Positions 1 to 24,611 of a stretch of 64,000 nucleotides of DNA are shown here, piece after piece (positions within the stretch are counted from its first letter, which is position 1; each line of letters opens with the position of its first letter). A model generated the notes under the pieces. That model searched no databases. It had not been told where the DNA came from and saw only the letters and a program-made list of their open reading frames with translations. The DNA comes from Adineta vaga (Eukaryota; Animalia; Rotifera). The stretch lies in contig CP075492.1 of NCBI GenBank assembly GCA_021613535.1, forward strand, positions 7,192,001-7,256,000, read 5' to 3'. The position numbers were made by a program, and so were the translations under genes.

Positions 1-198
1 TACATATGCTTTCTTCATGTATGCCCACGCATATGCATTAGTTAACAGAACTATGAAGGAAAAGACATTAGCAAACTGCGATGTTTATCATATAGGTTTA
101 TTTGTTTTCTTCCGCTAATCATCATCGACATTCATTATGAATAATCATATTCTTAATCTTATTGACATACAATGTACATCGATATATCGTTCTTTTAG

Positions 199-4544: not shown

Positions 4545-5190
4545 AAAAAAATGATTGATAAATTGGAAAAAGAATAGACTTCTTCAGATACATGGAAAAA
4601 CTTTTTTGTATTTCTCTTAACAACGAAAAATCTCTCGAGTTGATTTTGTCTGTGTATGTGTGTGCAATTCTTTTTTGTTTTGTTTTGTTTTTTTTTTGCA
4701 TTTGCACGATTGTTGTCATATAAATATCTATTTTTTGGTTTTCTTGTTAATGATCAATACAAATGTTTGCTTTTTTTGTTTGTTCGTGTGAGTGTGAGTG
4801 GATTTGAACTACATTCTTCTCTTTCGTCGTTTTCCTTTTCTCGGATGTTTATGCAATAAATTACGAATTCATTATTGGTTTTTTGAATTGCAAAACCAAT
4901 AGATACAAATTTATAAAAGCTTTGTTGGCGTCAGTAACTTGCATAGATTTAACGAATTGAAACAAATTGTTTTTTTTACTGATTGTTAAACTAACAATCT
5001 TTTTCGATAAGGAATGGCATTAGTAGTAAAGCATTATTCGAAATAAAGACAATGTTTAAATGAAAACAGTTGTTATAAAAACATATAGTATTCTTTTGAT
5101 ATTACTCATCCGTAGCGTTTATTTGTTACGTTTTGCATATTACTTCAAAGATAAAATACAGTGATATTCATTTTAAATAATAGAAAAGAG

Positions 5191-5800
5191 TTATTTTGCA
5201 GATATGAGCTCAATATCGATGATGATTCATATGACATTTGGATGCTGGACTGGCAACAAATGACGATAGATTGTGGCCACTCTTCCATAGTTAATCCAGG
5301 CTTGTTGCTATTCATCCTTCCCTTCGTGTATCCCACCAATGTTTTCATAACTCTGAGTAATATCTGGATGTTGTGGAGGAAGTGAGATTTTAGTCGAATA
5401 TTTAGTGCACGATTGTAATATTCCATGGTAAGGAGATACTCTCCAAGATCATTCTATACAGTTTCAATATTATTGTGTGATATATCTGTATTTGAGTGAT
5501 CCTCATCATATGCTTCCTGAAAAAGCGCAATTATCTTCATGTAATATCTCAACGCTATATCATCATCAGTTTTGCGTCGATGAACCACACCAATCCAGTT
5601 GTACAAGTTATCTATGGCAACATAATAGGATGGATCTGTTCTAATCTTGATTTCCAATGATTTATTGAACCATTGAAGACTGAAATTGTACTCACCTCTA
5701 TCAATGGTAAGAATATCAAGTGACCAGTACAAATAATAGCGAAGATTAACCTCTCTACCAAACGCCTCCATAGTCTTTCTTCATATGATCAAGAAGGGTT
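5191..5800 (-). pseudogene. Decayed tetratricopeptide-repeat (TPR) gene, 3' fragment
   Basis: TPR units spread over shifting frames (GEYNFSLQWFNKSLEIK; LYNWIGVVHRRK; YYNRALNIRLKS / LPPQHPDITQSYENIGGIH) with in-frame stops (KDE*QQAW; HPNVI*I). Confidence 0.8.
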
Positions 5801-6169
5801 TTCAAATCATGTTCATTATTTCCGCAAAGTGTAATGAATGATTTTTTTATCTTCTTCAATTGATTTCACTCGAAGAAGAAGAAGAACGTCAATCGATTTG
5901 AATTATTACCAGCAGTAAATATATTAATTAAAAGTGGTTCTTCAGTTTTTACTTGACTATTCTGATCCGCTTTTATGCGATTAATGAGATTTTTTTGTTA
6001 GATGTTGTCATCTTCAATTTGCCGTTCACTTCGAACATATCTGTTTAATTCAAGTGTATCGAATATTTCAATTTTTATTTCATTTTTACTCCCCTTGTAT
6101 ACAAAATGAATATGTTTAAAACTAGAATGCAATCTTTTATTATAACTATATAGGATAAAGAATCATTGC

Positions 6170-8125
6170 TCATACAAGTGTGATATCTGGTAAGTTACGT
6201 GATCTATTCATATTGTGTACATATTGTCTTGGTATATCATATACAGATGATATGGATGGATGTTCAGGAAATTCATGTATATGATACTGTTCTAGTAAAC
6301 CATTTCCCGAAATAATAGTTGATTCAAATGGTAGATGATTTTCCGACACATCTGAACTTCCTGAATATCCTTCATCATCGCGTCCTGGACTTAATGATGA
6401 TACGGGTGGTGATGATTTCTGTATAATATAAATTGGTATAGTTGTAGATGAGGGTGATAGTTCATAATCATCATGTACTCTTAATTTTGATACACTGGCA
6501 AATGAATCATATTCTAAGTAGATTGAATTGATGAATAAAAAGAAAAAGAGAGAAGGAAAGTGCACTTACTATTGTAACGACTCTTCTCATCTTCGTTAGT
6601 GCCATAGGAGGATAATGATGATGCTTTCTAAAAGAAAAAGAAAAAGTTACCATTATATTACATTAAAAGAAAGAAATAAGAAACTCAAAACTATTTAGAA
6701 AATTTGCAATGATTTTTTTTTAAAAATTAATCTAACCTTTGTCGGAGAACATAATCGATTAATTCTGAAATGTTTTCGTTTGATAATAATAATTCCTAGA
6801 ATGATAACTCCAACAACCACTAAAGCACTTAATATAATCGGTATAAGAGTAATCCATTGTGATTGAATTAACATTGATATATGTTCATCATCATCATCAT
6901 CATCATTTTTTTCTTCTTCTGTAAGTTCAAGTAAAAATGTATCTTGAAAATTCAATTGCTGATTCAATACTACATTGAATAGATATTGACCTCGAGGTGG
7001 TTTGATTAAAGATGTAATTGTACAATTAGATAACAATTGAAAATAATTCTCCATAGCTAATTGTATTCGACAAAATGTTGAATTAAAAATATGAACAGAT
7101 GAAAAAGAATTTCGATTGATTTTCAAATTTTTATGGATTAGAAATGGAATATTTCCATATTGATCCAATACTCGAACATATATTTTCACTTTAAATTGAT
7201 TATTAACAAACAACCGAATTACATAGATACTTTGTTCAATTCGATTCAATTTCTTTATAACAAATAAATCTCCTGTTTGTGAATCGATTGAAAATTTATC
7301 AATAGAATCAATTGAATAACTCACTTTACCACAAAATTCATTAGTTATTTTACGCATTAGCAACGTTTTGTCTTCTAGATTTTCTTTAATATCAATAATA
7401 TAATTCTTTTGTTGAAATGATAAATTACATATATATTCAGTTGATTTCATTCGAAATTCATATGATTGATTTGTACATAATAATGGTTGATCATTATCGC
7501 ATGCAGTTAATAATAAATAATAATAATCATAATGAATTAATTGTGAATTATTTCGTGTTGATAGAATAAATGTGATATCATTTTTAAATTGTCGTATTAA
7601 TTGAATTTGAAAATGTTCTGTATCATTTAAAGCTAAACTTATTTGATTTAATGATTGATCAGAATCTTTGATATTAATTGTTGCAAATGGTGTTGAAGAA
7701 AGATTTAAATCATATTTAATTATATTTACATCATAGAGAATAGAAGGATAAACGATCAAATTGATTTCAGGTGGATTATCATTGATATTAATGATATTTA
7801 TAATAAGTTCACTGAAAGAAGATGTAATAATCGATGATGAACGTACTTCAATTGTTAATTTATAGATTGGCATTATTTCATAATCGACAGGATTTAATAG
7901 AATCAATTCACCTGTTAATGAATTGAGATAGAACGTTTTATTTGTATCTCCATGAAGTTCATATTGAATTGACAATGATGGAGATGCAATAGCTTTAATT
8001 AAACCAATCTTAGTATAGATAGGTGTGGATTCCGAAACATAAATTTCATAAGATTTTTTTTCAAAATAGAGTAATGTTGTTGCATTAATTAATGAAATGA
8101 TGAATAGGATATGTAGAAGAATCAT
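6170..8125 (-). CDS. Protocadherin-like single-pass membrane protein (about 3 exons; ectodomain and TM in one large exon)
   Basis: Signal peptide, cadherin motifs (VSESTPI; VDYE; NINDNPP; LTACDNDQP; FSIDSQTGDL; VLDQYGNIP), TM helix WITLIPIILSALVVVGVIILGIIII-KRK, Ser-rich tail in ORF 6170-6565. Confidence 0.85.
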
Positions 8126-9937
8126 CTAGGATGAAATCAATGTAATATTTAGATCGACATTGTCTATGTGTTAGTGATATTTAATAACAATCGACAACTG
8201 TGTCGTGTTGATCAACAGAGATCTTACCTTGATCTGTGTGTTAATCGCATGTTGTGATCTGACACAATGCATGTGTATTTGTTCATTAGAAGGAAACAAA
8301 AAAAAAGAAGAAGAAGCGAGGTCGTTCGTCTATGATGAGAATGAAGGAAAAAACCTGAAGGATGTAATGTTACAGATGATGATAAGCGAAGAAACACCTG
8401 TATGTTTTAGAAGAAGAAAAAAAATGCTGTCGATTGTTTTGATCTAATTCATTGAACTAATTATACTAGCCGATGGCATTTAACTTTATTTTTCTTCGGT
8501 AATTGACGTGAATAATAAGGTTATACAGCTCAATCTTGTTACTAGAAAAAATGATGGACAGTGCACCACTGTTTGTTTTTGTTTCTATTCGATTTGGAGA
8601 AAAAAAAATTGAAAGGAAATTATTTGTTTCAACTAGGTTAAATGATCATATCCGGTTAGTTCAATGTCATGTCTACAATCTTTACTTACCATTCATTAGA
8701 GATAATATTTCTGCATGCAATAGGTCTCTATGACTGTGGCACTGTTCTAAACGTGATTCTAGGCGTGTAATTCGTTTTCAATAATGACACGAATAGGATT
8801 ATGAATCACTTTATGTCTATACTAAACACGATTGTATTAAACTCTTTCTTTTCTTTATTATGAGTGCTCTTATTAGTATAATTGTGCTAGAGAAAAGAAC
8901 GAGACATAAATGAATTTGTTGAATTGTACATTAAAGGCTCAAGAGAAAAAGACACTTGTAATCTCCTACTGATGATAATGATGAATGAGCCTTGTATATG
9001 TCTCATCGATTGATAGACATTCTTCAGGATCATTTGTAAACATTGAATGAAAGATACTATCATTTCTAGATTCACTCAATTCTATTCATATGTTTTAATA
9101 AAATAAATGAAGAATATTGCCTTTAAACACGTCTTGTTTGAGTCCATTGAATGTTGTTATACATATATCAAATTTCATTTGAACAGAAAAAGAACTAAAA
9201 AAAAGGTAATTACTCTTCACTTTTTGCCTGTACGATATAAACACAAACGTTTGTTCTTTCTCTTGAAATAAATTAAGTGGACAAGCACGAATGACTGTTC
9301 TTGTGTCAATTGATTGTTAAATGATCGATAGAATCAAAAAAGAAAGTCATTGTTCGTTCTTTTTTTTGGCGAGTGTAGTTTTTGATGAAATTAAATGAAT
9401 GATACAAGTTTTCTCATCGATCGAAGTGAGAAAAATATTTAAATGAATATTAATGACATGTTCATATCTCATGGAAGTTATCTTTCATTGGTGAATGAAA
9501 CAAAATCGATGATAAATGTGCTGATTATCTATGACATGTCTATTGACTAGGAAAATAAATGATTAGAACGAGTTTGGAATTATACAACTATAGTACAATG
9601 CAGCAGACAAAAGAGAATCTGAATGAATGATGTTTCGATTGATCGAACTTTCACTTTGTAGAAGAAAAAAAAACTCGGTAGTGATACTTGATTGGATCTC
9701 ATAAATTACACACAATAGCATTGCACAGTATTGATAATGATACGATCATCGACAAGCAATACATTTCTTTTTCATATAAAGTTGATGATCATATTGCATC
9801 ATTGATGTTTAAATTTCCAACTAATGTGAAATTCAATCCTTAGTTGATGTTGAATTAAGATAAAACTCATGGCATCATCGTTTGTACTTGAGATTAATCG
9901 AAATCAAAAGGATAGAAAGAAGAAGGAGAAACAATCG

Positions 9938-10728
9938 ATGGAAATGAATGAATTTCATGTGGAAGATTATCAAGTCAGTCCAGATTATTGGAATATTTCA
10001 CAACAGATCAATTATTCACCAAATCAAACTCAATTTATTGAATTATCGAATGTACACAATGATATATCACTAACAAATGAAATTCATACGAATACTTACC
10101 ATCTTTCAACTCCACAAACAATAATCTATAATTTACAATTACCAGAAAATTCTTCAAAGTACGAGAAATGATCTTCTTTTGTTTTTCCAGAGGAAATAAA
10201 CATTAAATGACGTTTTTAGATTCCGTTCGATACCCAACATCAATTCACCGCAATACCAATGGTACGTTTTTACTTTCAAATTTTTCTCACGTTTTTATTG
10301 TTCGATCAATTTTAGTCTTGTCTGTAATGATTTTTCCACTTCACATCACTACGGTGTACGAACATGTGAAGGATGTAAAGGATTTTTCAAAGTAATAATT
10401 CTATAGATTTTTTCTAAAACTTATTGTTTCAAATCTTTTAGCGAACAGTACAAAAAAATGCGAAATATGTGTGTCTATCCGATAAGAAATGTCTTGTAGA
10501 TAAACGTCGTCGTAATCGATGTCAAGTATGTTGATAGTTTCGTCCAGTGAAGTATTTATGATTGAAAACTTTTGTTTTTTTTGTCTGTATTTTTAGTGGT
10601 GTCGGTTTCAGAAATGTTTAGCTGTTGGAATGATGAAAGAAGTTGTTCGTACGAATGAATTAAAAGGACGTCGAGGTCGTCTACCATCCAAATTTCTTCA
10701 AAATCAAATAACTGAACAATCTGAATGA
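9938..10728 (+). CDS. NR4A: NR4A-family nuclear receptor (Nurr1/HR38-like), DNA-binding domain only; 5 exons
   Basis: Spliced translation [86 protein letters not shown], including the NR4A A-box RRGRLPSK; stop TGA at 10726-10728. An alternative in-frame ATG lies at 9869. Confidence 0.9.
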
Positions 10729-11683
10729 TAATAAATTTTTGCAGTTGTAATCTGTATGTCAAAGAAAACAAAAGAATATCTATTTTAATCTTTAATTCAA
10801 GAAAAGAAAAGTCTATATTCACATATGTTGTACCACAGTTATAGAAGTTAAGAGCAGCTTAGAGAGGACAACTTATCTAAAAATAAAATGATTAACGTCA
10901 CTAGCTTTTTTTACAAATAGAATCTTTCAAAGGCAGCGAAACATAAAATTGAACCAAAGAATTTCTTATTGCGTTTTATTACTCACTAACTTATAATTAA
11001 ATACGACGACATTGCCTACGCTTGATCCTACTATTTCATTCTAGACGAAGATGTTAATGACGTCTTTTGAACATCATCATATATTTTAAATATTTATAAT
11101 TCTAAATCAGTTAATACTCGTTACTGAACATGTGTATGACAAAACCTACGCATCTATTCATGACAAAACAAAAACTTTGATTCTAATTATTGTTGTTACT
11201 AAGAACTGTTGTGTTTCATTATGTTCATATCACTATCTTACAGATAAATAGACAGTTCTCGTTTTTTGTGATGAGAATATTATCTTAAACGCGATCGGCA
11301 TTATTATCGAGGGATATGAGTGGCTCGTATTACATTCATCGATATCTTGAAGGTAGAAGAGAAAAGAATATGAAGATCAGCAGAAGACTTTCAATTTCTA
11401 CATTAGGCTTTTTCCCTCAATCGGATATGAATGACAAATCAGCCATGTTCACCATCCACATTCAATCCAATGACGTTTGAGTAAAAATTTCAAACCACTA
11501 TTCCGTCTACAGTCAGGTTATTACAACATTACATCATCATTTTTTTTTCAATTCTGTTTTTTTTTGTCGCTGTCTGTATATAAATAACAGCAGCTATTCA
11601 ATGATTGAAATTACAATAGGGTAAAATAAGCATATAAATACTCGCAATAAGGTAAGCAACTTTCTTTTCTCTATATTTCCCTT

Positions 11684-11712
11684 TTCTTCTTCTTCTTCTT
11701 CTTCTTCTTCTT
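11684..11712. repeat. (CTT)n microsatellite, about 10 units
   Basis: Direct reading of the sequence. Confidence 0.9.
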
Positions 11713-13318
11713 CCATGTTGCGTCTCAATTATATAAAAAAGAAATGATTGGAATAACAAAAACAAGGACTTTAACCCCCTCAAGTAAGACTAAATAACAG
11801 ATACAAAACATAGACGCGTGGTGTTTGGCAGATCGCCACTTTGTTTTCTTTTTCTGTGCACTGAAAGAAAGAGAAGAAAAATATATAAAGACATTCGAGA
11901 TTCTTTTTCTTTTTTCCACCTTCCAATAACTATTTTTTTGTTTGTCAGTCTCGTCGTTCTGTATTCACTTTTTTCTCTTCGACTTTCTTCCCTTTTTTTG
12001 TGTTGTTATTATTGCTCTTGCTCATCTCCTTAGAATCTTGTTTTTTTCCTTCTGCTTCGTCTATTCTAACTATTAACTAAGAAGAAACTTTGATTTTGAT
12101 TCGTCAAATCTCTTCATAGTTATATTCCAAGCAAATGAAAAGAGGAAAAAACAACCATATTTATACTTGTTTTAAAGATGTGTCTAAAGTTTTAAAAAAA
12201 CAGACTCAATAATACTGTGATGAAAACAAACATTATATATTAATAGACTGTATATGAAATTGGAACGAAATTGACTGTACAAGTCAAAATCAAAAAAAAA
12301 TACGAGAGGAAAACTGATGTAATAGGATCTACTATCATTATATATGGCACGTTTCTTCGATTATCGATTCATGATCATTCACTTCTATCTGCATATACAT
12401 TTATCAAATATCCATTAACAAAAACTAGCTTCAGATTAAATTTTTCAAATCAAAATTCTTTTGATAAATAAATCATGCAGTCATTTTGATATAGGTCATC
12501 AGATTTTTTTCTCTCCTAAAGTGTGGCAATGACCGCTATGCTTGTTCTGTCTTAATCGTACCTCTTTTAACAACACGTTCTCTTTCTTCTCATCGATTAA
12601 TACAAATACAGAGTTACTCAATAAGTATATTAATGCAAGAAAATAATTTGTTATACTGCTAAAACAATAAAAAAAATATAAATTTTCTTTCTTTTTTTGT
12701 GAGTTATTCAATCGTTGAAATTTCATTGAATAGACAAGAACAAGTAGATATTATCTATTTCCTATGAATATTATTCGATATGTAATGTTGTAGAAAAAAA
12801 AGAAAAGAATTTTTTTGCATATTCTTTTCTCTTTCCTTCTCGTTCTTTTTCGTTCTCTTCCCATATTGTCAGACGAAGCAAGTGAGGCTTTTGATAGTTT
12901 TGATCGGTTACATTTTCTCTTTCGCTTTTCTTTGCTTCCCCCCCAAGAAAGAAAGAGCCAAGTGACAGTGACATATCGACGCTTGGAGAGAGAAAAAAAT
13001 GAGAAGTACCTATCTAAGAAAGAAAAGAGGAAACATCTACTACTCGCACCATCAGATAGACGTTTGCCTGGTGCAAATGATTCTTTCTCTTTTCTTTTCT
13101 TTCTTTCTGTCTCGTATTTTTTTTTCTTCTGTTCGTTCGTTTATGCTACTGTTGTACGACGTTTTGACGTATGTCTTTTTTTTCTTCTTCTTCTTCCTCT
13201 CGTCTGTTGTGTAGGGTGCTGTCTCTTTCTCTCAGTTGTGCTTACAAACGCGATTATTACTCTTTTAGATGATTTAGTCGATTATTTTCATAAAAAAAAC
13301 TAAACAACTTGCTCATCA

Positions 13319-14708
13319 ATGGATGAATGGCAAATTCCATCTCAACCACCACTACTATCACCGCATCCGCCTCCATCATCGCAACAACAACAACAAGAAA
13401 GAATGTCGATGAATAGTATCGGTCCGATACATAGTTATCATTCGATACGTACAAGACCTTCACCCTATCCAATGAATGAAGTTAAACAAACTTATTCATA
13501 TCAACAAACATCGATGTCTTTAAAAACGAATTCAAATTCCGTAAGTGAACATATTCTTTTATTTTAATTCAAAGGAAAATAAAACCGAATAAATTCTTTT
13601 CTATTCCAGAATGTCTATACTCCTCTTCCTTATCCACCTAATCATATGGAACAAATTCCACATCAACAACGGTTGATCACTGCTAAATCTACATCCGGCC
13701 CTATACCAACATACAATGCTGGCCAACAACAAATTCACTCAGCTCGAACACGTTCAATGCCATATCCTTCACCTACAATGTATACTCCTTCTCCTTCTAC
13801 TGTCTGCCAATGTAATAATTCATCACATATGCATTATCCAAATCAACAGCCAATGTATTATCAAAATTATTATCCACAATCTCAACCAACATCTTATCAA
13901 CCGAATTTTAATCCAAATAAATATGAACTCATGAAAAATAAGATGAAATCCAATTCAGACGAACCATTTTCTTCACCATCAACATCTTATCATCCATCGA
14001 TTTGTTCCAATTCTTATATCCCAGCTCAACAGTTACCACCACAATCGTTATCTTTATCATCAACATCTATGTCACAAGATTATCAAACATTTTCAAATCA
14101 ATCACAAATCTTTCCTAGTCCACCAAGTAATCCAAGTACACCTTATCAAGGTGAATTCAATGGCAATACAGACTTTGGCGTTCCATATCATCAAGGACAA
14201 CCAAGTTCAGTTAATTCATTAACAGATGCACTTTGCCCAAGTGGCGATACAACTGATCGACAGTTGACACCTGGGCCACCAGTAATATGGAAATTTTTAT
14301 TCACTAAACGTATTTTATTGATTTATTATTTAGAGTGTTGGTACGCCACGTGTTGCCCAACATCAATATTCATTTCCACAAACACCTTCAACACCAACAA
14401 CATCGAGACTATCTAGTGAACCAAACATCGATGAACTCACTGCATTTCTACAAGATCCAGTAAATATTTATCTAACCGATGATATTACATCTGTAAGTTT
14501 CAACTAATCTTTCATGTTTTACAGAAATAAATTTTTTTCTTTTTCTCTTTAGACACTCTTTGATGATATTGAAGTATTGGCTGATACTTATCTAGGTGGA
14601 AGAAGTAATAATGATCATCAAACTAATAGTGACAGTAGTTTAGATTATGATATTATTTTAAATTATCTCTGTTCGGATGATCTGATCAGTACGGTGTGTC
14701 GAAAATAA
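13319..14708 (+). CDS. Low-complexity P/Q/S/Y-rich protein with acidic C-terminus (4 exons); possible transcriptional co-activator
   Basis: ORFs 13319-13567 and 13646-14416 joined by GT-AG introns (~13541-13609, ~14282-14333, ~14493-14552); ends ...DDLISTVCRK* at 14706-14708. No globular domain recognised. Confidence 0.7.
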
Positions 14709-15074
14709 GACAAAAACCCAATCATTCTCTATTTTAATGTGCGATCGTTTTATTTGCTTTTTCTGTTTAATTGTATATAATTACTGAAAAGAAAAAAGAA
14801 ACTTCTTATTTATTGTATATGTGCTAGAGTTTGTCTTTTTTTCTCTTTCTCTCTCTCTATCTCTTCATCATTATTATTATTACTATCAATGTTTTTTTCT
14901 CTTGTTCAAGAAAAAAGTATTTTCGTATTTAATAAAAAATAATTCATGAAGATATACGATTTGTCATTTTCTTTACGAGATTCTCATTAAAAAAATCAAT
15001 TGTACCGTTTGTCGTACTTAAATAACATCCATAGTTGAACAAATGTAAGAGTAGATAACTGCAACGAAATTAAG

Positions 15075-16139
15075 TTAAAGCTGAAAAAGATGCTGTTGAT
15101 AAATTTCGAGCAAGTTTATCAAAACTTGGTGATGTTTGTAAGTCGATTCTTCTTTTTCTTCTTCAAAGAAATGTGATCATCATTACGTTGTTTTTCTAGA
15201 TATCAACGATGCATTTGGTGCAGCACATCGCGCTCATAGTTCAATTGTTGGTGTTAAATTAGAACAACGTGCTGCAGGATACTTAATGAAGAAAGAATTA
15301 GATTATTTTGGAAAAGTTTTAGAAAATCCCGAACGACCTTTTCTCGCTATTCTCGGTTTGTTTTTCATCATACATAAAACTTGTATATTTACGTTTTTCT
15401 TTCAGGTGGAGCTAAAGTTTCAGACAAAATTCAATTGATTGAAAATCTTTTGGATAAAGTCAACGCTTTAATTATTGGTGGAGGTAAATTTGATATATTT
15501 GAAGAGAAGAATAGATTAATATTCTATTGCTTTCTCTTAGGTATGGCATTCACTTTTCTTAAAGAAAAGGATAACATGAAAATTGGTAAATCATTATTTG
15601 ATGCTGAAGGCTCAAAATCAATTCAAAAAATTCTTGAGAAAGCTAAATCAAAAAATGTTGAAATTCATCTTCCTGTTGACTTCATCGTTGCTAAAGACCC
15701 TAAATCAACAGATACTAAAGAATCGACGAAAGAAAATGGTATCGAAGATGACTACATGGGTCTCGATATTGGTAAAGAATCCATTAAACAATTTAGTGAA
15801 GTTGTTAAAAAATCAAAAACTATTGTTTGGAATGGACCCATGGGTGTTTTTGAACAAGATCCATTTGCTAATGGCACAAAAGAATTACTTAAAGTTGTTG
15901 CTGAACAAACAAAGAATAAGGGTACAACAATCATTGGTGGAGGTGACACAGCTACTGCTTGTGCTAAATTTGGTTTCAATGATCAAATGAGCCATGTTTC
16001 AACTGGAGGTAAATTCAATTGATTGTTTGTTTTTCAAAATAATGCAATTGAATTGATTTTAGGCGGTGCAAGTCTTGAACTTTTGGAAGGAAAAGATCTT
16101 CCCGGTGTTACTGGTCTTAGTGACAAATCGGCTAAATAA
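15075..16139 (+). pseudogene. PGK: 5'-truncated copy of phosphoglycerate kinase; introns retained, no start codon
   Basis: Begins abruptly at [14 protein letters not shown], then [58 protein letters not shown]. Near-identical to the reverse complement of 21075-22139. Confidence 0.93.
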
Positions 16140-16722
16140 ATTCAATCTTTCAACCCTACACATTCTTATTTTATTGTCTAGTCTAGCCATGTAAAATCCT
16201 ATCTATTTTAGTTCTTTTTTCTAGTTACCCATTTCGAATAAAGACTAATCTATTTTTACTTAGATCAACAAACTAATTTCATTCTTTTATTATTATTATT
16301 CGAGGCATTTCTCTACATATATAAATGATGTTCGTATAGAGGAAGTGTACAGAGTCGAACCTATTTTGAAGTTTCATTCAAAATCAATAACGGCCAATTG
16401 ACTATTCAGCAATTATCATAATCGTTTCATCGAGGCATACTTTCGTCGCCCAGTCACTGAAAGGATTAACTTCGCAGTTAAACGACATTAAAATAAAGCA
16501 AAATAACAGCTTCAAATTGTTTTGTTTGTTGACGTCATGATGATTATTGTAAAATTATTCAGAGACACCGAATAATTGTATCTATATCATTTGCGTTCAG
16601 TTTTATTTCATATTAATGGTAGAAAAAAAGAATCTTCTTCGATGATTTACCAAAAATAATATCTCGTAATGAATATTCTTCTTCGGTTAGACATTCTTTT
16701 CGAGGTACAAATACGTTTGAAT
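15075..16722 (+). repeat. Left arm of ~1.65 kb inverted repeat (partner 20495-22139)
   Basis: TTAAAGCTGAAAAAG (15075) matches the reverse complement ending at 22139; homology ends at ...TTTGAAT (16722 / 20495). Scattered SNPs and small indels. Confidence 0.95.
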
Positions 16723-17150
16723 TACTGATATTTGATGTAATATCTAGAAATGTTAATTGTGCTCTTCCTTATGTATTACTATATCGTCCAAGATTCAGTG
16801 GAAAACAATAAAGATAAGTCCAAGAACCAAAATCTCGACCCATACTATTCGATGGTGAAGAATAATTTCCACCCCTATTGAAGTGAGATAAACTACACAC
16901 CATAAAGTAACAAGAACACCTAAATCAGCTATAATTCCAGTACCGATATAAGCTTGACCATAAGATTGAGCATCTGGTTGAATACTGAAATAACGCCATG
17001 TTCGAGTTAAAGCTCGACGTGTACAATTTTGAGCATTTAAATCGTAGATATATATTGCATTTTCATATCATACAGTGCAATTCGATCGTAGGAAGCATTT
17101 TGATGTCCAATAATAACTTCTTCGAGAATTCGTTCACGATGATTTGTTGC
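16723..17150 (-). pseudogene. Ependymin-related protein (EPDR) fragment
   Basis: HRERILEEVIIGHQNASYDRIALYDMKMQY / IYDLNAQNCTRRALTRTWRYFSIQPDAQSYGQAYIG ... WTYLYCFP ... T*GRAQLTFLDITSNIS. Has a +2 frameshift in an AT run near 17050 and an in-frame TAA, and is cut at the repeat junction before the usual DPxxFxPPxxC end. Confidence 0.75.
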
Positions 17151-17243
17151 TTTCTGTTTCTATAGTTGAATAGATATCGTATTCTTTTAATAGATAGATG
17201 GTTAGTTATCAACATTACACAAAAGAAGTACATAGATGAGAAT

Positions 17244-18080
17244 CTATTGTTTTTCAAGAGGTGGAGCAGATGGATAAAGATTATTACTATCCATTACATC
17301 TTGATATGCTGGTGGTAATGCTGATGCTGTTCCCATTGGATATGGTTCTTTTTCATTTTTAATTGAACCATAATCAGTTGCTTGTCCTTGTTCAACGATT
17401 TCTGGTGTTGGTGCTAATAAAGAACTTCGTGGATGTTGTGTTGGTTCTTTATATCTTTCGATATCACAAGCCCAAAGTGCACTACCAATAACATTTGTTA
17501 CTGGTGTGACTACTTTAAGAAATGGAATCATTTCTAATAAAACTCCAATAATACCAAATTGTGTATGATCATCTCGATTTTCTTCAACAAAATGTCGTCC
17601 TTGTAAAAATGATAAACCGAGTAAATAATTGGAATTAAATTTAATGGTGATGTTATAACAAGAAGTACTACACGAAAGAAAATCAATATTAAAAATGATT
17701 TAATACATGTATATGTTATTGCTGAACTTCGGTGTGTTTCACCTCCATGTAATCCCATTGTTTCTTGTCTCCAGACTGAATCGAATATAACATCCATATA
17801 ACATGCAATAAAATAATGAAGAGATAACAAGAATTGATACACCTATTTCAAATAATGTGACAAAAAAAACTTATTAACCATGATAATTAATCAGGCATAT
17901 AGTTTTCAAATGCATAAGCTTGTAATGGAAATATAAATACGAATAATAAGACTGATGTAACTATTGTTGATAATAGCATTATTATTGAACCACAAAATAT
18001 ATGTCGCCATAAAGTTGGACGTGACTAATTAAATATAATATTCCACGAAACGGATAACTATATGCTGAATGAAGGACCAT
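17244..18080 (-). pseudogene. Intronless EI24-domain (fungal RRT8/Lds-like) multi-TM gene, disrupted
   Basis: MVLHSAYSYPFRGILYLIS / RPTLWRHIF ... MPD*LSW ... DVIFDSVW ... PLNLIPII / LGLSFLQGRHFVEENRDDHTQFGIIGVLLEMIPFLKVVTPVTNVIGSALWACDIE. Frameshifts, one stop and an apparent internal deletion. Confidence 0.7.
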
Positions 18081-18094
18081 TTCTTTCAAAGAAA

Positions 18095-18540
18095 TTCTTT
18101 GAATGAATAACAAATATTACAAAAATTTTCTATTTGAATTCAATTTATACAAATTATTATCCAACAATATGGTTAAAAATTCCAATATTACATCCAGAAA
18201 ATTAGAATGATTTATAAATTATTTGTAATGGTTTTAATAAAGGACATATTATATCAACAGGTGTTGGTACTCAGTTATTTTCCTATTAAAAAAATTTTTT
18301 TCCTAAATAAAGTAGTTTATAGAATATGAAGTTAATAATGATCAACAATTTCTCAATGTATTAACATATGTACAAGAAAATAGTCAACAATTACGGGAAC
18401 TTTCTCGATCATACGCTTCGAAATATTCATGGGAAAGATCATCAAGAGAGAATCTTCTAGATATTTATAAAAAAAAGATTCCCTCTATCATTAATTACAT
18501 ATTAAGATTATACGTAGCTATGATTTTATCAAAGTTTTGA
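18095..18540 (+). pseudogene. Decayed GT4 (GT-B fold) glycosyltransferase fragment with a large internal deletion
   Basis: GHIISTGVGTQLFS resembles the GVDxxxFxP linker, and YEVNNDQQFLNVLTYVQENSQQLRELSRSYASKYSWERSSRENLLDIYKK resembles the GT4 C-terminal helices. Several in-frame stops; the nucleotide-sugar-binding segment is missing. Confidence 0.55.
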
Positions 18541-19277
18541 GAAATTAAACTTTTATACTCAATGTAGAAAGCTATAATTTCTAATAAATTATTAACTCAT
18601 TTTTCTATTGACAGAATCTTCTTTGATCACATAGTTGTTGTTTAATAAAACAAAATATATGTCTACATGACCAAGGATATATATACGCTTTGCTTTTGCT
18701 TTCATGTTGTGTGTGTTCATCTACAATAAAGTCGTACATCACAGATAACTTTTATTTTATATTATAAATGATCATTGATCTCATAGTCAATTAAAAATTC
18801 CATTAGGAAAGACAACAACGAGAGAAAGATTCATCATAAATAATTACAGATATATTGTATTTGTTTTATGTCAGGTAAAAATTTTAATATTACATCTACA
18901 ATTAATATAAAGAATTTAATATCAAAGATGTACAATATAATTTTACATTGGATTGATTACTTTAGATGAATCTCAATATTTTATATATGATATAGAATAA
19001 CTGTTAAAATTTATTCAACTCGATGGATTTTTGCTAAACTATTTGTATTTGACAGTAGTTTAATTAATGTTCATCTTTATGTTTTATTAAAAAAGATCGA
19101 AATCATTAAACATAGAATGATTCTGAGGGTATCAGTTGTATAGCTGTTTCAATTGATTTTTTCTCATCATCATTTTAGTTTTTCTTCTTTTCTTTAATGT
19201 TTTCATGAAGTATGATCCATCGAAAAAATCTTCCTTCCATGAATGAAATTTGAAATTTCATATGTGAGAGGGAGTAG

Positions 19278-19638
19278 TGTAGAAATCGTTAATTCGATTC
19301 GAGTATTAAACTTCTTCTTCAACTTCTAAAGTTTCAGTTTAGAAATCGAGTACTCGAGTTTTAAACTATGGTATTTTATAAATATCCTAACATATGGTAT
19401 CGTCGACTATTAAAAATGTGCATTTAACTGATATAGTGTAAATGCTTTCAAAACCGTTATCAATCGGTGTCTTTCCCGCTGAGTCCGCTTTTTGTGTGTT
19501 CAGTGTGGCAGAGAGGTCCAAAGCAATCTCCCTTTGTTCTTTGAGTTCCAACACCCACACCCTTAAAATTCGAGTACTCGAATTCTAACTTTATAAATTT
19601 AGAAGTTTAATAGTTGAAACGTCTTTTCGATTTCTACA
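19278..19638. mobile_element. Degenerate MITE-like non-autonomous DNA element (~360 bp)
   Basis: Termini TGTAGAAATCG / CGATTTCTACA; imperfect ~80 bp inverted ends, each carrying the palindrome TCGAGTACTCGA (19346-19357 and 19570-19581); GC-richer non-coding core. No clear target-site duplication. Confidence 0.65.
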
Positions 19639-20420
19639 TGTATGCATGTTTTTGCATCGCACATGTTGTTTTCTTTTTTGGTGGTTCTTCAACTTCATAT
19701 GCATTCTTATCTGATGGAATTAATGCTCGTTCTGAAACATATTCACCTTAAATAAATAATTTTGATGAATAGAAATAAAAAAGAAATATATATGAACATT
19801 TACAGCCATTGTTACACATGTAAATCTATTTGATTCAATTGGATTCCAAACCAATGAACAAACAGCACATTTTGATGAATAACTTTCAAAAAAGAAAATA
19901 ACAAAATGAATTTCTTTACCTCATGTAAATATCGAAAGTTGAACGATTAACGACTAATAGTCGTCCATTAACATAAACAACAATAGATAAAGTTTCACAT
20001 GGTGAATATCGAATAAGATTAACAATCTAAAAGAACAAAAAAAGAGAATAATTTTTTTTAAGAAAAATAAAAAACAAACATCTTCAATCGAATCATTTCC
20101 ATACGTTTTTTTTCTTGTCCATTTATCTGATTCAAAGAATTGAACAGTATTCTTGACTGGAATTGCTAACATCTAAAGAAAATATTATTATTCCAAATAA
20201 ATGTTTTGTCTTATATGATCTTTTTTTTTATCCCAATCGAGTTTTACTAATGAAATAGCCGTTCCAAATTGAAAAACAAATTCGAATATATATATTTTGA
20301 AAATTTTCTAAGAAAATCTCACTCAATATGATCAGATTTTTCAATAAGATTTAATTCTATAATTACTGATTGATTATCAATATTAAATATTCGAATGAAA
20401 CCATCACAACATGATGTTGC
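19639..20420 (-). pseudogene. WDHD1: Internal fragment of WDHD1 (AND-1/CTF4) WD40 region, introns retained
   Basis: Exons ATSCCDGFIRIFNIDNQSV; FGTAISLVKLDWD; MLAIPVKNTVQFFESDKW; IVNLIRYSPCE; CAVCSLVWNP, collinear with remembered AND-1 motifs (ASASCDGSVRVW; LLAIPVEKSVKLY; LNIVTWSPCG; AICGLAWHP). No N-terminal repeats, SepB or HMG domain. Confidence 0.75.
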
Positions 20421-20494
20421 CTTTGAAAAAGAAAAAAGAGATGTTTATTTGTTTGTTTGATTTTTAATTTCAATGAAAAGTTGATTCTCTTACG

Positions 20495-22139
20495 ATTCAA
20501 ATGTATTTGTACCTCGAAAAGAATGTCTAGCCGAAGAAGAATATTCATTACGAGATATTATTTTTGGTAAATCATCGAAGAGAATTCTTTTTTTCTATCC
20601 TTAATATGAATAAAACTGAACACAAATGATATAGATACCATTATTCGGTGTCTCTGAATAATTTTACAATAATCATCATGACGTCAACAAACAAAACAAT
20701 TTGAAGCTGTTATTTTGCTTTATTGTAATGTCTTTTAACTGCGGAGTTAATCCTTTCAGTGACTGGGCGACGAAAGTATGCCTCAATGAAACGATTATGA
20801 TAATTGCTGAATAGTCAATTGGCCGTTATTGATTTTGAATGAAACTTCAAAATAGGTCTCGAGTCTGTACACTTCCTCTACGAACATCATTTATTATGTA
20901 GAGAAATAGCTCGAATAAAAATAATAAAAGAATGAAATTAGTTTGTTGATCTAAGTAAAAATAGATTAGTCTTTATTCGAAATGGGTAACTAGAAAAAAG
21001 AACTAAAATAGATAGGATTTTACATGGCTAGACTAGACAATAAAATAAGAATGTGTAGGGTTGAAAGATTGAATTTATTTAGCCGATTTGTCACTAAGAC
21101 CAGTAACACCGGGAAGATCTTTTCCTTCCAAAAGTTCAAGACTTGCACCGCCTAAAATCAATTCAATTGCATTATTTTGAAAAACAAACAATCAATTGAA
21201 TTTACCTCCAGTTGAAACATGGCTCATTTGATCATTGAAACCAAATTTAGCACAAGCAGTAGCTGTGTCACCTCCACCAATGATTGTTGTACCCTTATTT
21301 TTGGTTTGTTCAGCAACAACTTTAAGTAATTCTTTTGTGCCATTAGCAAATGGATCTTGTTCAAAAACACCCATGGGTCCATTCCAAACAATAGTTTTTG
21401 ATTTTTTAACAACTTCACTAAATTGTTTAATGGATTCTTTACCAATATCGAGACCCATGTAATCATCTTCGATACCATTTTCTTTCGTCGATTCTTTAGT
21501 ATCTGTTGATTTAGGGTCTTTAGCAACGATGAAGTCAACAGGAAGATGAATTTCAACATTTTTTGATTTAGCTTTCTCAAGAATTTTTTGAATTGATTTT
21601 GAGCCTTCAGCATCAAATAATGATTTACCAATTTTCATGTTATCCTTTTCTTTAAGAAAAGTGAATGCCATACCTAAGAGAAAACGATAGAATATTAATC
21701 TATTCTTCTCTTCAAATATATAAAATTTACCTCCACCAATAATTAAAGCGTTAACTTTATCTAAAAGATTTTCAATCAATTGAATTTTGTCTGAAACTTT
21801 AGCTCCACCTGAAAGAAAAACGTGAATGTACAAGTTCTACATATGATGAAAAACAAACCGAGAATAGCGAGAAAAGGTCGTTCGGGATTTTCTAAAACTT
21901 TTCCAAAATAATCTAATTCTTTCTTCATTAAGTATCCTGCAGCACGTTGTTCTAATTTAACACCAACAATTGAACTATGAGCGCGATGTGCTGCACCAAA
22001 TGCATCGTTGATATCTAGAAAAACAACGTAATGATGATCACATTTCTTTGAAGAAGAAAAAGAAGAATCGACTTACAAACATCACCAAGTTTTGATAAAC
22101 TTGCTCGAAATTTATCAACAGCATCTTTTTCAGCTTTAA
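20495..22139 (-). repeat. Right arm of ~1.65 kb inverted repeat (overlaps the intact PGK)
   Basis: Reverse complement of 15075-16722. Confidence 0.95.
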
Positions 22140-22581
22140 TTTTATTTCCTTGTTTATCTTTAACTGAACCTTCTTCTTCCAAATGAAAACGAAGATTTTC
22201 TAGTAAAAGAACTTGACCATTGTCGGCTTCACTGACTGCTTTTTCGACTTCATCACCAACACAATCATTGAGAAACTTAACATCTTTACCAAGTAATTTT
22301 TTTAATTCTTCAGCAACAGGTTTTAAACTTTCTTTCTCGACACGTTTACCATCGGGACGACCCAAATGAGACATAAGAACAACACATTTTGCTCCTTTAT
22401 CAAGAGCATATTTGATTGTTGGTAAGGCGCCTTCAATACGTTGTTTATCTTTTACTTGACCAGTTTCTTTATCCAATGGAACATTGAAATCCACACGAAT
22501 TAAAACACGTTTTCCTTTGAGATCAAGATCTTCGATACTTAATTTATTACTAATACTAGCTTTAGCATTGGATTCAGCCAT
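21075..22581 (-). CDS. PGK: Phosphoglycerate kinase, intact, 5 exons
   Basis: [85 protein letters not shown]; stop TAA at 21075-21077. Confidence 0.98.
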
Positions 22582-23078
22582 TGTTAAGATTTATGTTTTC
22601 TAGTAAGAACTTTCGAGAAAGATTCAAAAAATGAATAATTATAGGCGCAAAATAATAAGTTTCTATTTTCTTCTTCTTCTTCTTTTCTCTCGGTACAAAG
22701 TATAGACACAAGCGGGGTCAGAACTAGAAAATATGGACTTGTAGAACAGTAATGCAGACAGAACGAACAAAATAAAAAAATGTCGGAGGCTAACGTCAAT
22801 GTTACTGACTTTGTAATGGTGAAGTTAATTGTATGTTTCGACATGTTTAAGTAAAAGTTAAAAAAATAATTTTTTTTCGTTTTAGAACAAATAATACAGG
22901 ATCGCTTAGAAGTGCGTCGACAAAGTAAACGTGAATATCGCTTCAATAACATAAAGAATTCGATTGTTTTCTTTGTAATAGAATAGTATTTGCTAATATT
23001 TTCGATTTTCTAGTATAATCTTAACGTATAAATCTTCGCATAAGTAATATTTGTTTTAGTAATTTATTAAAAATAATC

Positions 23079-24611
23079 ATGGCCACTGCTCAAGTTCAAC
23101 AATCTCATCCATTAGGCTTTTCTGTTCAGACTCCAAGATTTCAAACGATGGGTTTACATCCAGAATTGCTAACGCGTATTCAATTAACGAGTTCACCTAA
23201 TCTTGGTCCTGGTTCGCATGATCTTTTACAGTATGCTGATTTTAGTGAGAGAAATCTTGTAAAAAATATTCAAGGACCTAATTGGCAGCAAGGATTATAT
23301 ACTGAGCAAATGGCAAAAATTCCTCTTTCATCATTTAAAGATACATATGAGAGACGTAAAGAAGATGAACGACGTCTTGGTCCCGGTGCTTATAATATTG
23401 ATGATTTCTTAACTGAATCAGATCGAAAACCAGGTTGTACACGAGGTGCACTTGATCAATTAGCTCCTCGATTTCCAAAAGAACAATTAGTAAGGAAATG
23501 TTTTCTCTCTCCCTCATATTTCTTCATTTTCAAAGATTATGCTTCATAAAAATAGGATAGAGCACCACCACCGGCAGCCTACGGTATTCCTGATGAAAAG
23601 ATTGTTGATAAATATTGGAAGCAAGGTAGTACAGTACCTTCATTTGAATGGAGACAAGGACCTAGATCATTACCACTTCAAGTAAAATAAAAGCAATGGA
23701 AGATAAGTTTTGTATTGAACGAATGATTGATTAATTCTTTTAGGGTACAAAAATCGGTCCAGGAACTTATAGTATCAAAAGTTCGATTGATGAATTAGTC
23801 AAGAAACGTGTTAGTGATAAAGGACCATATCAAGTTTTTACTATCAATCGTTCAGCACCTATTAAAACTGGTCATTATTCTCTGTTAGATACATGGGATC
23901 TATCACCTGATTTTCCATCGAAAGAATATCCTGAATCTATATCTTTAGCGACACAAATAGAGAAAAGAAAAAAACATGGATTATTTAGTAAATTAGATCG
24001 TTTTCAAAAGAAACCGACGGATCGAATCTCAATTGAACATCCAGGTAACTAGTTGTTCAAAGATTTACAAATACGTAATTTACTTGACAATTTTCTTTTC
24101 AAGGTTTGGAACCGAAAAATGTCACTTTTCCTGGTCCTGGTGCTTATGCTACTGTTCGTCAATGGGAAGAACAGGATTTTCATAAGAAAAAAGTTCCATT
24201 CAATAACACTGCATCACGAAATGATAAACGTTCATTTACAAATGTTGGTAGTCAAAATGTATGTTTATTCTACTTTCATTCAGTTGAATCAACTCATGAT
24301 TTCATTGCATCTATTCTTTTGTCGTTCAGGCCGTTGGTGTTGGTCGATATAATATAGCCGTACCCGTTCGAGATGAAACTATTGCTGATCGCCGTAAACG
24401 ATCAAAACGAAAAGGTGTTGGATTCTGTTCGACAACAGATCGTTTCACAACAGCACATAGTGAAGCATTACTCAAGTAAAATATGTTCCTTTGTCATTTT
24501 CTGTCATACACATATATAATTTCATCTCGTTTTAGTGAACGTTTAAAACCACAAAATCTTCGTGCTGAACAACGAACACAATTATATCTCACCGGTCATG
24601 TATCATCGTAA
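23079..24611 (+). CDS. Sperm-tail PG-rich (SHIPPO) repeat ciliary microtubule-associated protein, LEXM/CIMAP2-like
   Basis: Repeated PGPGxY-type units (LGPGSH, LGPGAY, PPPAAY, IGPGTY, PGPGAY, VGVGRY); 6 exons; head-to-head with PGK. Confidence 0.75.

Follow-up and report, generated by a model that had tools for sequence, protein, structure and literature searches.

The window, a 64,000-nucleotide stretch of chromosome 3 (C3) of Adineta vaga, contains one inverted repeat of at least 60 nt, at a mid-chromosome locus near 7.2 Mb. Its two arms (15062-16722 and 20495-22152, approximately 1.66 kb each) enclose a spacer of 3.8 kb (16723-20494) that holds a broken ependymin-related gene (EPDR), a broken EI24-like gene, a GT4 piece, a MITE-like repeat and an internal fragment of WDHD1 with its introns. 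The arms differ from each other at 37 of 1,661 positions (2.2%, or 97.8% identity, corresponding to about 1.1% per arm), and over their innermost 121 nt the identity is only 93%. Searches of the organism's own genome covered the A. vaga assembly of 100.8 Mb in six contigs, named C1 to C6 here; chromosomes 1-3 of AV20 are homoeologous to chromosomes 4-6 (PMC8494291). The features of the locus, in window coordinates, are as follows.

13973-14954, + strand: left flank, the 3' end of a Q/P-rich gene and downstream DNA; the last stretch that is collinear with C6 and with L030, a metagenome contig of a wild relative

14955-15061, no strand: 107-nt stretch from the end of collinearity to the outer edge of the left arm (homology to L030 ends at 14954)

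15062-16722, no strand: left arm, consisting of the promoterless 3' two-thirds of PGK (+), 473 nt of intergenic DNA and the EPDR tail (-)

16723-17159, - strand: native EPDR pseudogene, comprising what remains of exon 2, the intron, and an exon 1 that lacks its 5' end and begins at about codon 50

17161-17240, no strand: 80-nt stretch between the truncated EPDR and the EI24 copy, without a match in the genome or in L030

17241-18139, - strand: EI24/CysZ-family pseudogene, ATG at 18080-18078 and stop at 17246-17244

18142-18660, + strand: GT4 glycosyltransferase pseudogene fragment, the C-terminal part and about 180 nt downstream

18661-19271, no strand: 611 nt of AT-rich unique DNA (GC 0.25), matching only itself in the own-genome search

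19272-19638, no strand: MITE-like dispersed repeat, a 291-nt unit ending in CCCACACCC and then a 76-nt inverted copy of its own start

19639-20494, - strand: internal WDHD1 (AND-1/Ctf4) fragment of six exon blocks and five introns

20495-22152, no strand: right arm, holding a second EPDR tail (+) and the 3' two-thirds of the complete PGK gene (-)

22153-22581, - strand: 5' part of PGK exon 1, outside the right arm, ATG at 22581-22579

The sequence-only reading had described this spacer as a patchwork of at least four unrelated broken genes, and four unrelated dead genes or gene fragments are indeed present, carrying the stops, frameshifts and deletions that it had noticed (a stop, insertions and a 70-nt deletion in the EI24 copy, two frame breaks in EPDR, and a 24-nt deletion in the WDHD1 fragment). 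It had also held that the pieces are packed almost without intergenic DNA; this does not hold throughout, as two stretches of unique AT-rich DNA, of 611 nt (18661-19271) and 80 nt (17161-17240), are part of the spacer. We found no coding (Pfam) or RNA (Rfam) remnants in the unassigned DNA of the spacer region, the 611-nt stretch included, and no homology of the 107-nt, 80-nt or 611-nt stretches to the intergenic DNA of the wild relative (L030).

The EPDR remnant (Pfam Ependymin domain PF00811, E = 1.2e-7 for 16798-17067, a score at the gathering level) lacks its first ~49 codons and has frame breaks near 17060 and near 16770. Its amino-acid identity to P0033 and P0087 is 73-78%; it aligns with the EPDR genes of C6 and has the two-exon structure of the rotifer paralogues. 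Its reading frame had been thought to be cut exactly at the left arm junction, but exon 2 passes position 16722 and runs into the left arm for its last 35 codons, to a stop at 16613-16615 (- strand). This layout across the junction matches that of the chromosome 6 paralogues and of metagenome contig L031, in which EPDR is unbroken across the place that corresponds to 16722/16723, and the left inner junction is native gene continuity. A second copy of the 35-codon tail is found in the right arm (20495-20601 on the + strand, with its stop at 20602-20604).

The other gene in the arms is PGK (Pfam PGK, E = 9e-51 for 22018-22590). The left-arm copy is promoterless and runs on the + strand from about codon 147 to a stop at ~16137-16139. 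The own-genome search recovered only the right-hand gene and this partial copy, and because the 5' part of exon 1 adjoins the right arm only, the right-hand PGK is the only complete copy in the genome. Since EPDR is continuous with the left arm and the 5' exon of PGK with the right arm, each arm is contiguous with one native neighbour; the duplicated sequence was ancestrally unique (PGK is single-copy), and each copy has a different native neighbour. Nothing is delimited or captured by the arms, which represent a duplication of parts of two host genes, the 3' part of PGK and the 3' end of EPDR.

At the other end of the spacer, the WDHD1 fragment corresponds to the latter half of the first WD40 domain. 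It retains five introns between its six exon blocks, as had been proposed for an internal fragment on the - strand, and the intron GTAAG that had been placed within 1-2 nt of the right junction begins exactly there (20494/20495). Searched singly, the exons gave weak matches to Pfam WD40_WDHD1_1st (exon codons were pooled only to count substitutions); a profile scan for the WDHD1 family with the Pfam model was swamped by generic WD40 genes. The fragment is 75-78% identical to C5:15778079 and C2:13650363 and 69% identical to C6:3098097; with introns included, its DNA identity to the three WDHD1 loci amounts to 70-77%, and its assignment to WDHD1/AND-1 and its orthology to full genes are supported. 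Exon block 2 no longer has its flanking splice sites, and the fragment has a 3-nt insertion in addition to the 24-nt deletion. It evolves neutrally, its lineage-specific changes comprising 6 synonymous and 18 non-synonymous substitutions. Other parts of this WDHD1 copy, including the missing 5' part, are absent from the genome, in which the only hit was an unrelated 98-nt scrap (C2:576262). The neighbouring element had been called a MITE; it is a dispersed repeat (dozens of genome copies at 81-94% identity, with boundaries set from five of them), but its structure is a unit followed by its own inverted start, and no target-site duplication was seen around it. The nearest joint is 850 nt away from it.

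The EI24 copy extends from ~60 nt upstream of its ATG to 3 nt past its stop and is 86-89% identical to C2:15825435-15826383, where an intact, intronless gene of 300 codons is located (C2:15825478-15826377; Pfam EI24, PF07264, E = 9e-22, positions 1-199 of 199). EI24-like copies number three genome-wide, of which one is intact. The window copy is broken, with a +2 insertion, a TGG>TAA stop, a +1 insertion in a T run and the 70-nt deletion evident from the alignment, and for this reason its match to PF07264 is weak and partial (E = 0.0035). The GT4 piece is 94-96% identical to C2:15832544-15832986, the intact GT4 gene being C5:15946979-15948070. It shares with the C2 copy an internal deletion of ~336 nt, indicating that an already dead gene was copied, and it retains ~70 nt that are missing from the C2 copy. 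The GT4 homology does not start ~15 nt from the EI24 ATG, as had been supposed, but 62 nt from it (18078-18080), and the joint between the two pieces has at most 4 nt of microhomology and ~5 nt of filler.

As to whether the parents are syntenic or unlinked, the answer is divided: the relatives of EI24 and of GT4 are linked on C2 at a distance of 6.2 kb (in a relative orientation opposite to that in the window), and those of WDHD1 are found 0.17-2.2 Mb from there or on different chromosomes. A single-event origin of the EI24 and GT4 pieces is plausible, given their 6-kb linkage; against it stands their divergence, which differs approximately two-fold and is awkward for arrival in one event. Neutral divergence in the window lineage is ~5.4% for EI24, ~2% for GT4 and much more for WDHD1, all above the ~1.1% of each arm, which agrees with the earlier impression that the pieces are older than the near-identical arms. 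At least three of the pieces are non-collinear, DNA-level copies from other places in the genome. Their unequal neutral divergence favours separate arrivals, at different times, at a single site. The foreign DNA predates the arms, differs in age from piece to piece and is specific to the A. vaga lineage.

We compared the locus with its homoeologue on C6 and with the wild relative. Window positions 1-14395 are collinear with C6:9253563-9275666 (+); the left flank (13974-14395) matches C6:9275198-9275666 (+), and further along C6 there are three EPDR genes (9277756-9285556), each of them on the + strand. In the wild relative, the left flank is 80.6% identical to L030:1-928 (+), and the order is flank gene (+), 708 nt, and a complete EPDR exon 1 (+), with L030:1783-2032 matching window 17150-16899 in reverse. 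EPDR is on the + strand after the flank in C6 and L030 and on the - strand in the window, and is therefore inverted here; the segment between the arm copies is inverted relative to the outgroup arrangement. Neither L030 nor the C6 homoeologue has any of the foreign pieces between its flank gene and EPDR.

These comparisons bear directly on the proposal of a collapsed homeologous segment, according to which the pieces are the remains of genes of the homoeologous block, whittled by deletions. The proposal is correct for EPDR, which is collinear with the chromosome 6 EPDR cluster, but neither the C6 block nor L030 has a counterpart of EI24, GT4 or WDHD1 (the relative has ~700 nt between flank gene and EPDR), and chromosome 2 matches the EI24 and GT4 pieces at 86-96% identity, much more closely than C3 matches C6 in this region (66-80%). 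Homoeologous fractionation is refuted for three of the four pieces, whose relatives are on C2 and C5 (EI24 and GT4) or at C5:15.78, C2:13.65 and C6:3.10 Mb (WDHD1), and as an account of the whole locus we regard it as hardly credible.

The rearrangement has two novel joints, J1 at ~15061-15075 and J2 at 20494/20495, both known from the assembly alone. An exact-protein search for PGK exon 1 and a metagenome scan with a 26-nt pattern, neither of them informative here, gave no independent instance of J2. The junction sequences contain no repeats or transposons that would have pre-existed at the two breakpoints, and no telomere repeats, terminal inverted repeats or target-site duplications were seen at the junctions; the only CCCACACCC at the locus is inside the MITE-like repeat, and the joints are free of telomere hexamers. 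No duplication was seen at the outer arm edges. The outer left joint shows no significant duplication or microhomology: we considered, and dropped, a short second duplication (GTAAGAG...) marking a second staggered break there, its match to the spacer end not being significant (p ~0.1).

The anatomy of arms and joints also bears on dedicated or recurrent capture, in which a break-prone site or an element serially ligates fragments between inverted arms, or in which an element of the Pack-MULE or Helitron type carries them. Several unrelated gene fragments with introns between inverted repeats are what the locus shares with such elements: four unrelated dead genes are present in 3.8 kb, with introns kept and donors on other chromosomes, their unequal ages suggest repeated hits, and an older chromosome 3/6 inversion breakpoint is within ~1 kb. 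We nevertheless consider a capture system very unlikely, because the inverted repeats belong to single-copy host genes, not to the ends of an element, one of the inner junctions is native, and neither transposon termini nor target-site duplications nor telomere seams are present. The unit is single-copy; the own-genome search found no second copy of any internal spacer junction, and no further inverted repeat of 60 nt or more occurs in the 64 kb. In other eukaryotes, furthermore, duplicated fragments have already been described as inserted where breaks are repaired (PMC3445842). Helitron- or Pack-type capture, the latter being among the suggestions of the sequence-only reading, is rejected on the uniqueness of the junctions and the host-gene identity of the arms; the lack of transposon ends, target-site duplications and further copies of the internal junctions speaks against the Pack type.

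The spacer is best read as a real patch of dead gene pieces that was flipped by a small, recent inversion duplicating 1.66 kb at one break, and the locus as an ordinary repair scar, not a new fragment-capturing system. The history that we think probable, if by no means certain, is one inversion of ~5.4 kb, after the patch had formed, in which one break was staggered and the EPDR-tail/PGK-tail segment was thereby duplicated. The ancestral chromosome 3 order, as fixed by the comparisons above, was flank gene (+), EPDR (+), PGK (-), the last two being arranged tail to tail. In the A. vaga lineage (the insertion itself is established by the same comparisons), the short spacer between flank and EPDR and the first ~49 EPDR codons were replaced by ~3.3 kb of second-hand DNA: the old internal WDHD1 fragment, the MITE-like repeat, and the EI24-like copy head to head with the GT4 piece, the donors of the last two belonging to one 8-kb neighbourhood in subtelomeric chromosome 2. 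The pieces, which are DNA-level copies, may have been made during double-strand-break repair from ectopic templates, by filler DNA or template switching, and the patch was probably built in at least two to three events of different age, after which the pieces decayed neutrally and EPDR died. Later, at about the age of haplotype divergence, one rearrangement would have inverted the ~5.4-kb block (patch, EPDR and EPDR-tail/PGK-tail segment); one break would adjoin the flank and the other would be staggered by 1.66 kb, so that the segment was filled in on both ends. The outcome would be the present order of flank, arm, inverted spacer, arm' and the 5' part of PGK, with PGK intact on the right and EPDR contiguous on the left, and only two new joints (~15061-15075 and 20494/95) would be needed.

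Among the observations that fit this history less well are the identity of only 93% over the inner 121 nt of the arms and an arm divergence (2.2%) that is close to the allelic divergence (1.7%), leaving some room for haplotype-related assembly error. The first could mark a separate history at the inner edge, as would arise if an inverted copy of the EPDR 5' part plus arm had first been inserted beside the flank through a duplication of the fold-back or template-switch kind, and the EPDR 5' part at its old place had later been deleted or overwritten, so that the patch came to abut the right arm. Replication-based inverted duplications are common, and the present map would be the same; this sequence of events, however, takes three joints and two events, as opposed to two joints and one event, its deletion must stop exactly at the arm edge, and the patch pieces look older than the arms. 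It is rejected on parsimony only, and we rate it as possible but unlikely. The second observation raises the prospect that the inverted arm and flipped spacer are an assembly artefact, produced by a chimeric haplotype join or by chimeric long reads, as the palindromes of the 2013 assembly were artefacts (PMC8494291). AV20 was, however, checked for palindromes by its authors (PMC8494291); a haplotype mix-up requires two false joints in non-repetitive sequence, fold-back chimeric reads yield arms without a 3.8-kb spacer, and the orientation of EPDR differs from that in the relative and the homoeologue, as expected of a real inversion. We judge an artefact to be quite improbable.

An inversion with duplication at a breakpoint can account for the palindrome. 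Under a staggered-break model, inversions have been described that have inverted duplicates of the breakpoint sequence on either side (Ranz et al. 2007, PLoS Biol, PMC1885836), and copies that are each contiguous with one native neighbour are the expected signature of such events (PMC1885836). The A. vaga locus resembles them in the duplication of unique host-gene sequence, the one native neighbour per copy, the inverted segment between the copies and the breakpoints without repeats; it differs in its size (~5.4 kb, as compared with tens of kb to Mb), in being duplicated at one breakpoint only, in occurring in an asexual bdelloid, and in that the mechanism is one we infer. The inversion in A. 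vaga is tiny, and the two copies therefore form a spaced palindrome.

For the patch, a counterpart exists in the repair of double-strand breaks by filler DNA or SDSA, which, according to Wicker et al. (2010; cited in PMC3445842), relocates genes and parts of genes to non-collinear positions. Common to both are non-collinear, DNA-level copies with introns kept, abrupt intragenic ends, loss of target sequence and the lack of transposon ends, and the one joint examined here (EI24/GT4) has little or no microhomology. That work, as represented in the citing paper, concerns plants and often ties the process to transposon insertion, whereas the present case is in an animal, involves several ages at one site and two donors 6 kb apart, and has a filler-DNA origin and a link to repair that we infer from anatomy alone. 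More tentatively, and with a good deal of doubt, the ~3.3-kb patch might reflect repeated ectopic-template repair at one mid-chromosome site, the ends having been patched at least two to three times, once with a switch of template from one place to another 6 kb away in the subtelomeric part of chromosome 2, and the site, which is ~1 kb from the older chromosome 3/6 inversion breakpoint, having later been inverted.

The locus does not reveal a new mechanism or system. It is a fully dissected small scar in a chromosome-level A. vaga genome, with its ancestral order fixed by an outgroup contig and a homoeologue, and because the large palindromes of the first A. vaga assembly were artefacts, a small spaced palindrome with a worked-out history is useful for read-level validation. 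It also shows that remnants of dead genes travel as DNA from one bdelloid chromosome to another with neither transposon ends nor telomere seams, which bears on the mending of broken chromosomes. If multi-hit patches of this kind are common in bdelloids, they would be a within-genome counterpart of the route that integrates foreign DNA.

We found one inverted repeat within the 64-kb window, which lies mid-chromosome on chromosome 3 (7192001-7256000), with arms at 15062-16722 and 20495-22152 and a spacer of 3772 nt. In a global alignment the arms differ at 37 of 1661 positions (97.8% identity, or a divergence of about 1.1% per arm), and the outer edge of the left arm is imprecise (15062-15075). 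Both arms carry the C-terminal two-thirds of phosphoglycerate kinase (PGK; Pfam PGK, E about 1e-63). The N-terminal exon, with its ATG at 22581, was found outside the right arm and nowhere else (Pfam E=9e-51), and a search of the organism's own genome returned no further PGK copy; the real gene is thus the PGK on the right, and that in the left arm is a promoterless 3' copy. PGK has no counterpart on chromosome 6 (chromosomes 1-6 are C1-C6 below). The innermost 110 nt of either arm are the end of exon 2 of an ependymin-related gene (EPDR; 35 codons and a TAA stop), which in the left arm runs on into the spacer EPDR and in the right arm comes after a WDHD1 intron. In the large PGK exon all three differences between the arms are synonymous (15752, 15911 and 15914 versus 21462, 21303 and 21300), too few to separate selection or gene conversion from chance. 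The inner 121 nt (16602-16722 versus 20495-20615) are 93% identical and the remaining arm 98%, a difference that might come from an inner edge of greater age or from gene conversion limited to the outer parts.

The spacer contains the following features:

16723-17159, minus strand: EPDR remnant (Pfam Ependymin, E=1.2e-7)
17241-18139, minus strand: copy of an EI24/CysZ-family gene, 86-89% identical to C2:15825478-15826377
18142-18660, plus strand: C-terminal part of a GT4 glycosyltransferase gene, 94-96% identical to C2:15832544-15832986
18661-19271: AT-rich unique DNA
19272-19638: dispersed, MITE-like repeat (a 291-nt unit plus a 76-nt inverted copy of its own start), with dozens of genomic copies
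about 19700-20494, minus strand: internal WDHD1 fragment, 70-77% identical to WDHD1 loci on C5, C2 and C6

The description of this spacer as a gene graveyard, given in the sequence-only reading, largely holds, in that the pieces are broken and unrelated. The packing is not complete, about 700 nt of the spacer being assigned to no piece; GT4 begins 62 nt, and not some 15 nt, from the EI24 ATG; and EPDR reads straight through the left junction (16722/16723) into the arm instead of being cut there, this being native gene continuity.

Comparison with metagenomic orthologues and with three intact chromosome-6 EPDR genes, each of two exons, shows that the remnant lacks its first 49 or so codons and has frame breaks near 17060 and 16770. 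Chromosomes 4-6 are the homoeologues of chromosomes 1-3 in AV20, the chromosome-level Adineta vaga assembly (PMC8494291). The left flank (1-14395) is collinear, in the same orientation, with C6:9253563-9275666, directly after which lie the three EPDR genes, all on the plus strand. A search with the C6 EPDR exon identified two metagenomic ORFs, P0033 and P0087, as nearest to the window EPDR (73-78% identity; others at most 62%). The 2041-nt metagenome contig carrying P0033 (L030) is 80.6% identical to 13973-14954, within the flank region, and 708 nt beyond this match carries the whole of EPDR exon 1 in the same orientation, matching 17150-16899 reversed; a second contig (L031) covers both EPDR exons and the intron between them, including the point equivalent to the left junction. 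Together with the C6 order, these contigs indicate that EPDR ancestrally had the orientation of the Q/P-rich flank gene; here it is inverted. Neither the related species (L030) nor the homoeologue has the EI24, GT4, repeat and WDHD1 pieces, so these are lineage-specific insertions in place of a short spacer and the EPDR 5' end.

Each arm adjoins a different native sequence, EPDR on the left and the PGK 5' part on the right, from which it follows that the locus originally read EPDR (plus), a tail-to-tail spacer and PGK (minus); the order is now flank, arm, inverted EPDR and patch (the foreign pieces), arm', PGK 5' part. A single inversion of patch, EPDR and arm (about 5.4 kb) would produce this order if the PGK-side break were staggered by 1.66 kb and both ends filled in, duplicating the arm; two new joints would suffice. 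Staggered breaks of this type have been put forward to explain the inverted duplications seen with 17 of 29 Drosophila inversions (PMC1885836); at 5.4 kb the scale here is smaller, and the copies thus form a spaced palindrome. No significant second duplication was found at the outer left joint. An identical map would result from a fold-back or template-switch error of replication; a two-step history of inverted duplication and later deletion, which requires more events, is less likely. An assembly artefact is unlikely, though arm divergence lies near allelic divergence (about 1.7% heterozygosity in AV20); the palindromes in the 2013 draft genome proved to be artefacts (PMC8494291).

An older rearrangement lies within about 1 kb of this recent palindrome. 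The left side is collinear with C6:9.25-9.28 Mb in the plus orientation (C6:9275666-9285556 beyond the block), and from 23136 onward the right flank follows C6 in reverse, from 9206594 to 9168142 (9.21 to 9.17 Mb). These opposite orientations reveal an older chromosome 3/6 inversion with one breakpoint between EPDR/PGK and 23.1 kb (22600-23136). Two rearrangements at one spot are too few for a hot spot.

The patch pieces are DNA-level copies that retain introns (as had been claimed; the WDHD1 fragment has five) and upstream or downstream DNA, with ends inside genes. The EI24 copy takes in about 60 nt ahead of the ATG and 3 nt after the stop; its lesions are a +2 insertion, a stop (TGG>TAA), a +1 within a run of T and the loss of 70 nt. 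Its C2 relative is intact, intronless and 300 codons long (Pfam EI24, E=9e-22). The C2 relative of GT4 is also a pseudogene, and both share an internal deletion of about 336 nt relative to the intact C5:15946979-15948070, so that an already dead gene was copied; the window piece keeps about 70 nt that the C2 copy has lost, and the C2 copy reaches about 160 nt farther 5'.

The parents, for which syntenic and unlinked positions had been contemplated, give a mixed picture: 6.2 kb separate the EI24 and GT4 relatives in subtelomeric chromosome 2, where a forkhead and a flavin monooxygenase gene stand between them, and those of WDHD1 are on C5, C2 and C6. The head-to-head EI24/GT4 joint shows no more than 4 nt of microhomology and some 5 nt of filler, which together with this proximity suggests a template switch inside one donor neighbourhood; two events may instead be involved, given that EI24 and GT4 differ two-fold in divergence.

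Elsewhere, a third EI24-like copy (L020:5946-6631; C2:8399946-8400631) is likewise broken, with several stops and a 12-nt deletion, and has a copy of the MITE-like repeat 1.7 kb upstream. The terminal part of this repeat (as at 19290-19369 and 19563-19619) also makes up long tandem arrays of 52-nt period at C5:1629978-1632613, C3:19678078-19679729, C1:17449124-17450777 and C2:15595015-15596570. The intact, intronless C5 GT4 gene (L017:6979-8070, plus) stands back to back with a UDP-sulfoquinovose-synthase-like gene (L017:5501-6667, minus; together C5:15945501-15948070) that matches NCBIfam NF041015 at E=4e-130, under the curated cut-off; this looks like a sulfolipid-type pair in an animal genome, probably of foreign origin. 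Directly past the GT4 stop is a short head-to-head palindrome of telomere repeats (L017, about 8085-8140: GGGTGTGGGTG ... CACCCACCC).

The WDHD1 fragment, searched exon by exon, comprises six exon blocks (153 codons) and five introns, one exon lacking its flanking AG and GT; the intron reported to start at the right junction (20494/20495) does so exactly, with GTAAG. Its lineage-specific changes (6 synonymous, 18 non-synonymous, versus 10 and 2 in the C5 gene) are those of a neutrally evolving sequence, and the remaining parts of this copy were not found in a search of the organism's own genome. Chromosome-6 WDHD1 (L019, C6:3097669-3100798 region), has two in-frame stops and, over the 153 codons compared, neutral-looking changes (13 synonymous and 32 non-synonymous). 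It is probably a pseudogene, the working copies then being those on C5 and C2. A WDHD1 N-terminal exon has also left an isolated 98-nt scrap (L035:1501-1598; C2:576262-576359), 85% identical to the C5 gene in unrelated surroundings, shows that stray gene scraps are present elsewhere in the genome.

Singleton changes in the window lineage number 33 of 611 positions for EI24 and 3 of 187 for GT4, and the WDHD1 branch is far longer than either, so the pieces differ in age; their divergence exceeds the 1.1% or so per arm, bearing out the earlier view that they are older than the arms. No telomere repeats, transposon ends or target-site duplications were found at any joint inspected. Judging from its anatomy, the patch may have been laid down by filler-DNA or SDSA patching of double-strand breaks; it resembles the repair that PMC3445842 describes as scattering genes and gene fragments to non-collinear sites. 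The proposed fragment-capture cassette lacks support, the arms being host genes. We favor, with reasonable though not strong confidence, a small inversion of recent date that duplicated sequence at its breakpoint and that overlies an older, lineage-specific patch of gene fragments from elsewhere, next to a dying native EPDR. The locus is a new, well-resolved case of known kinds of repair scar.
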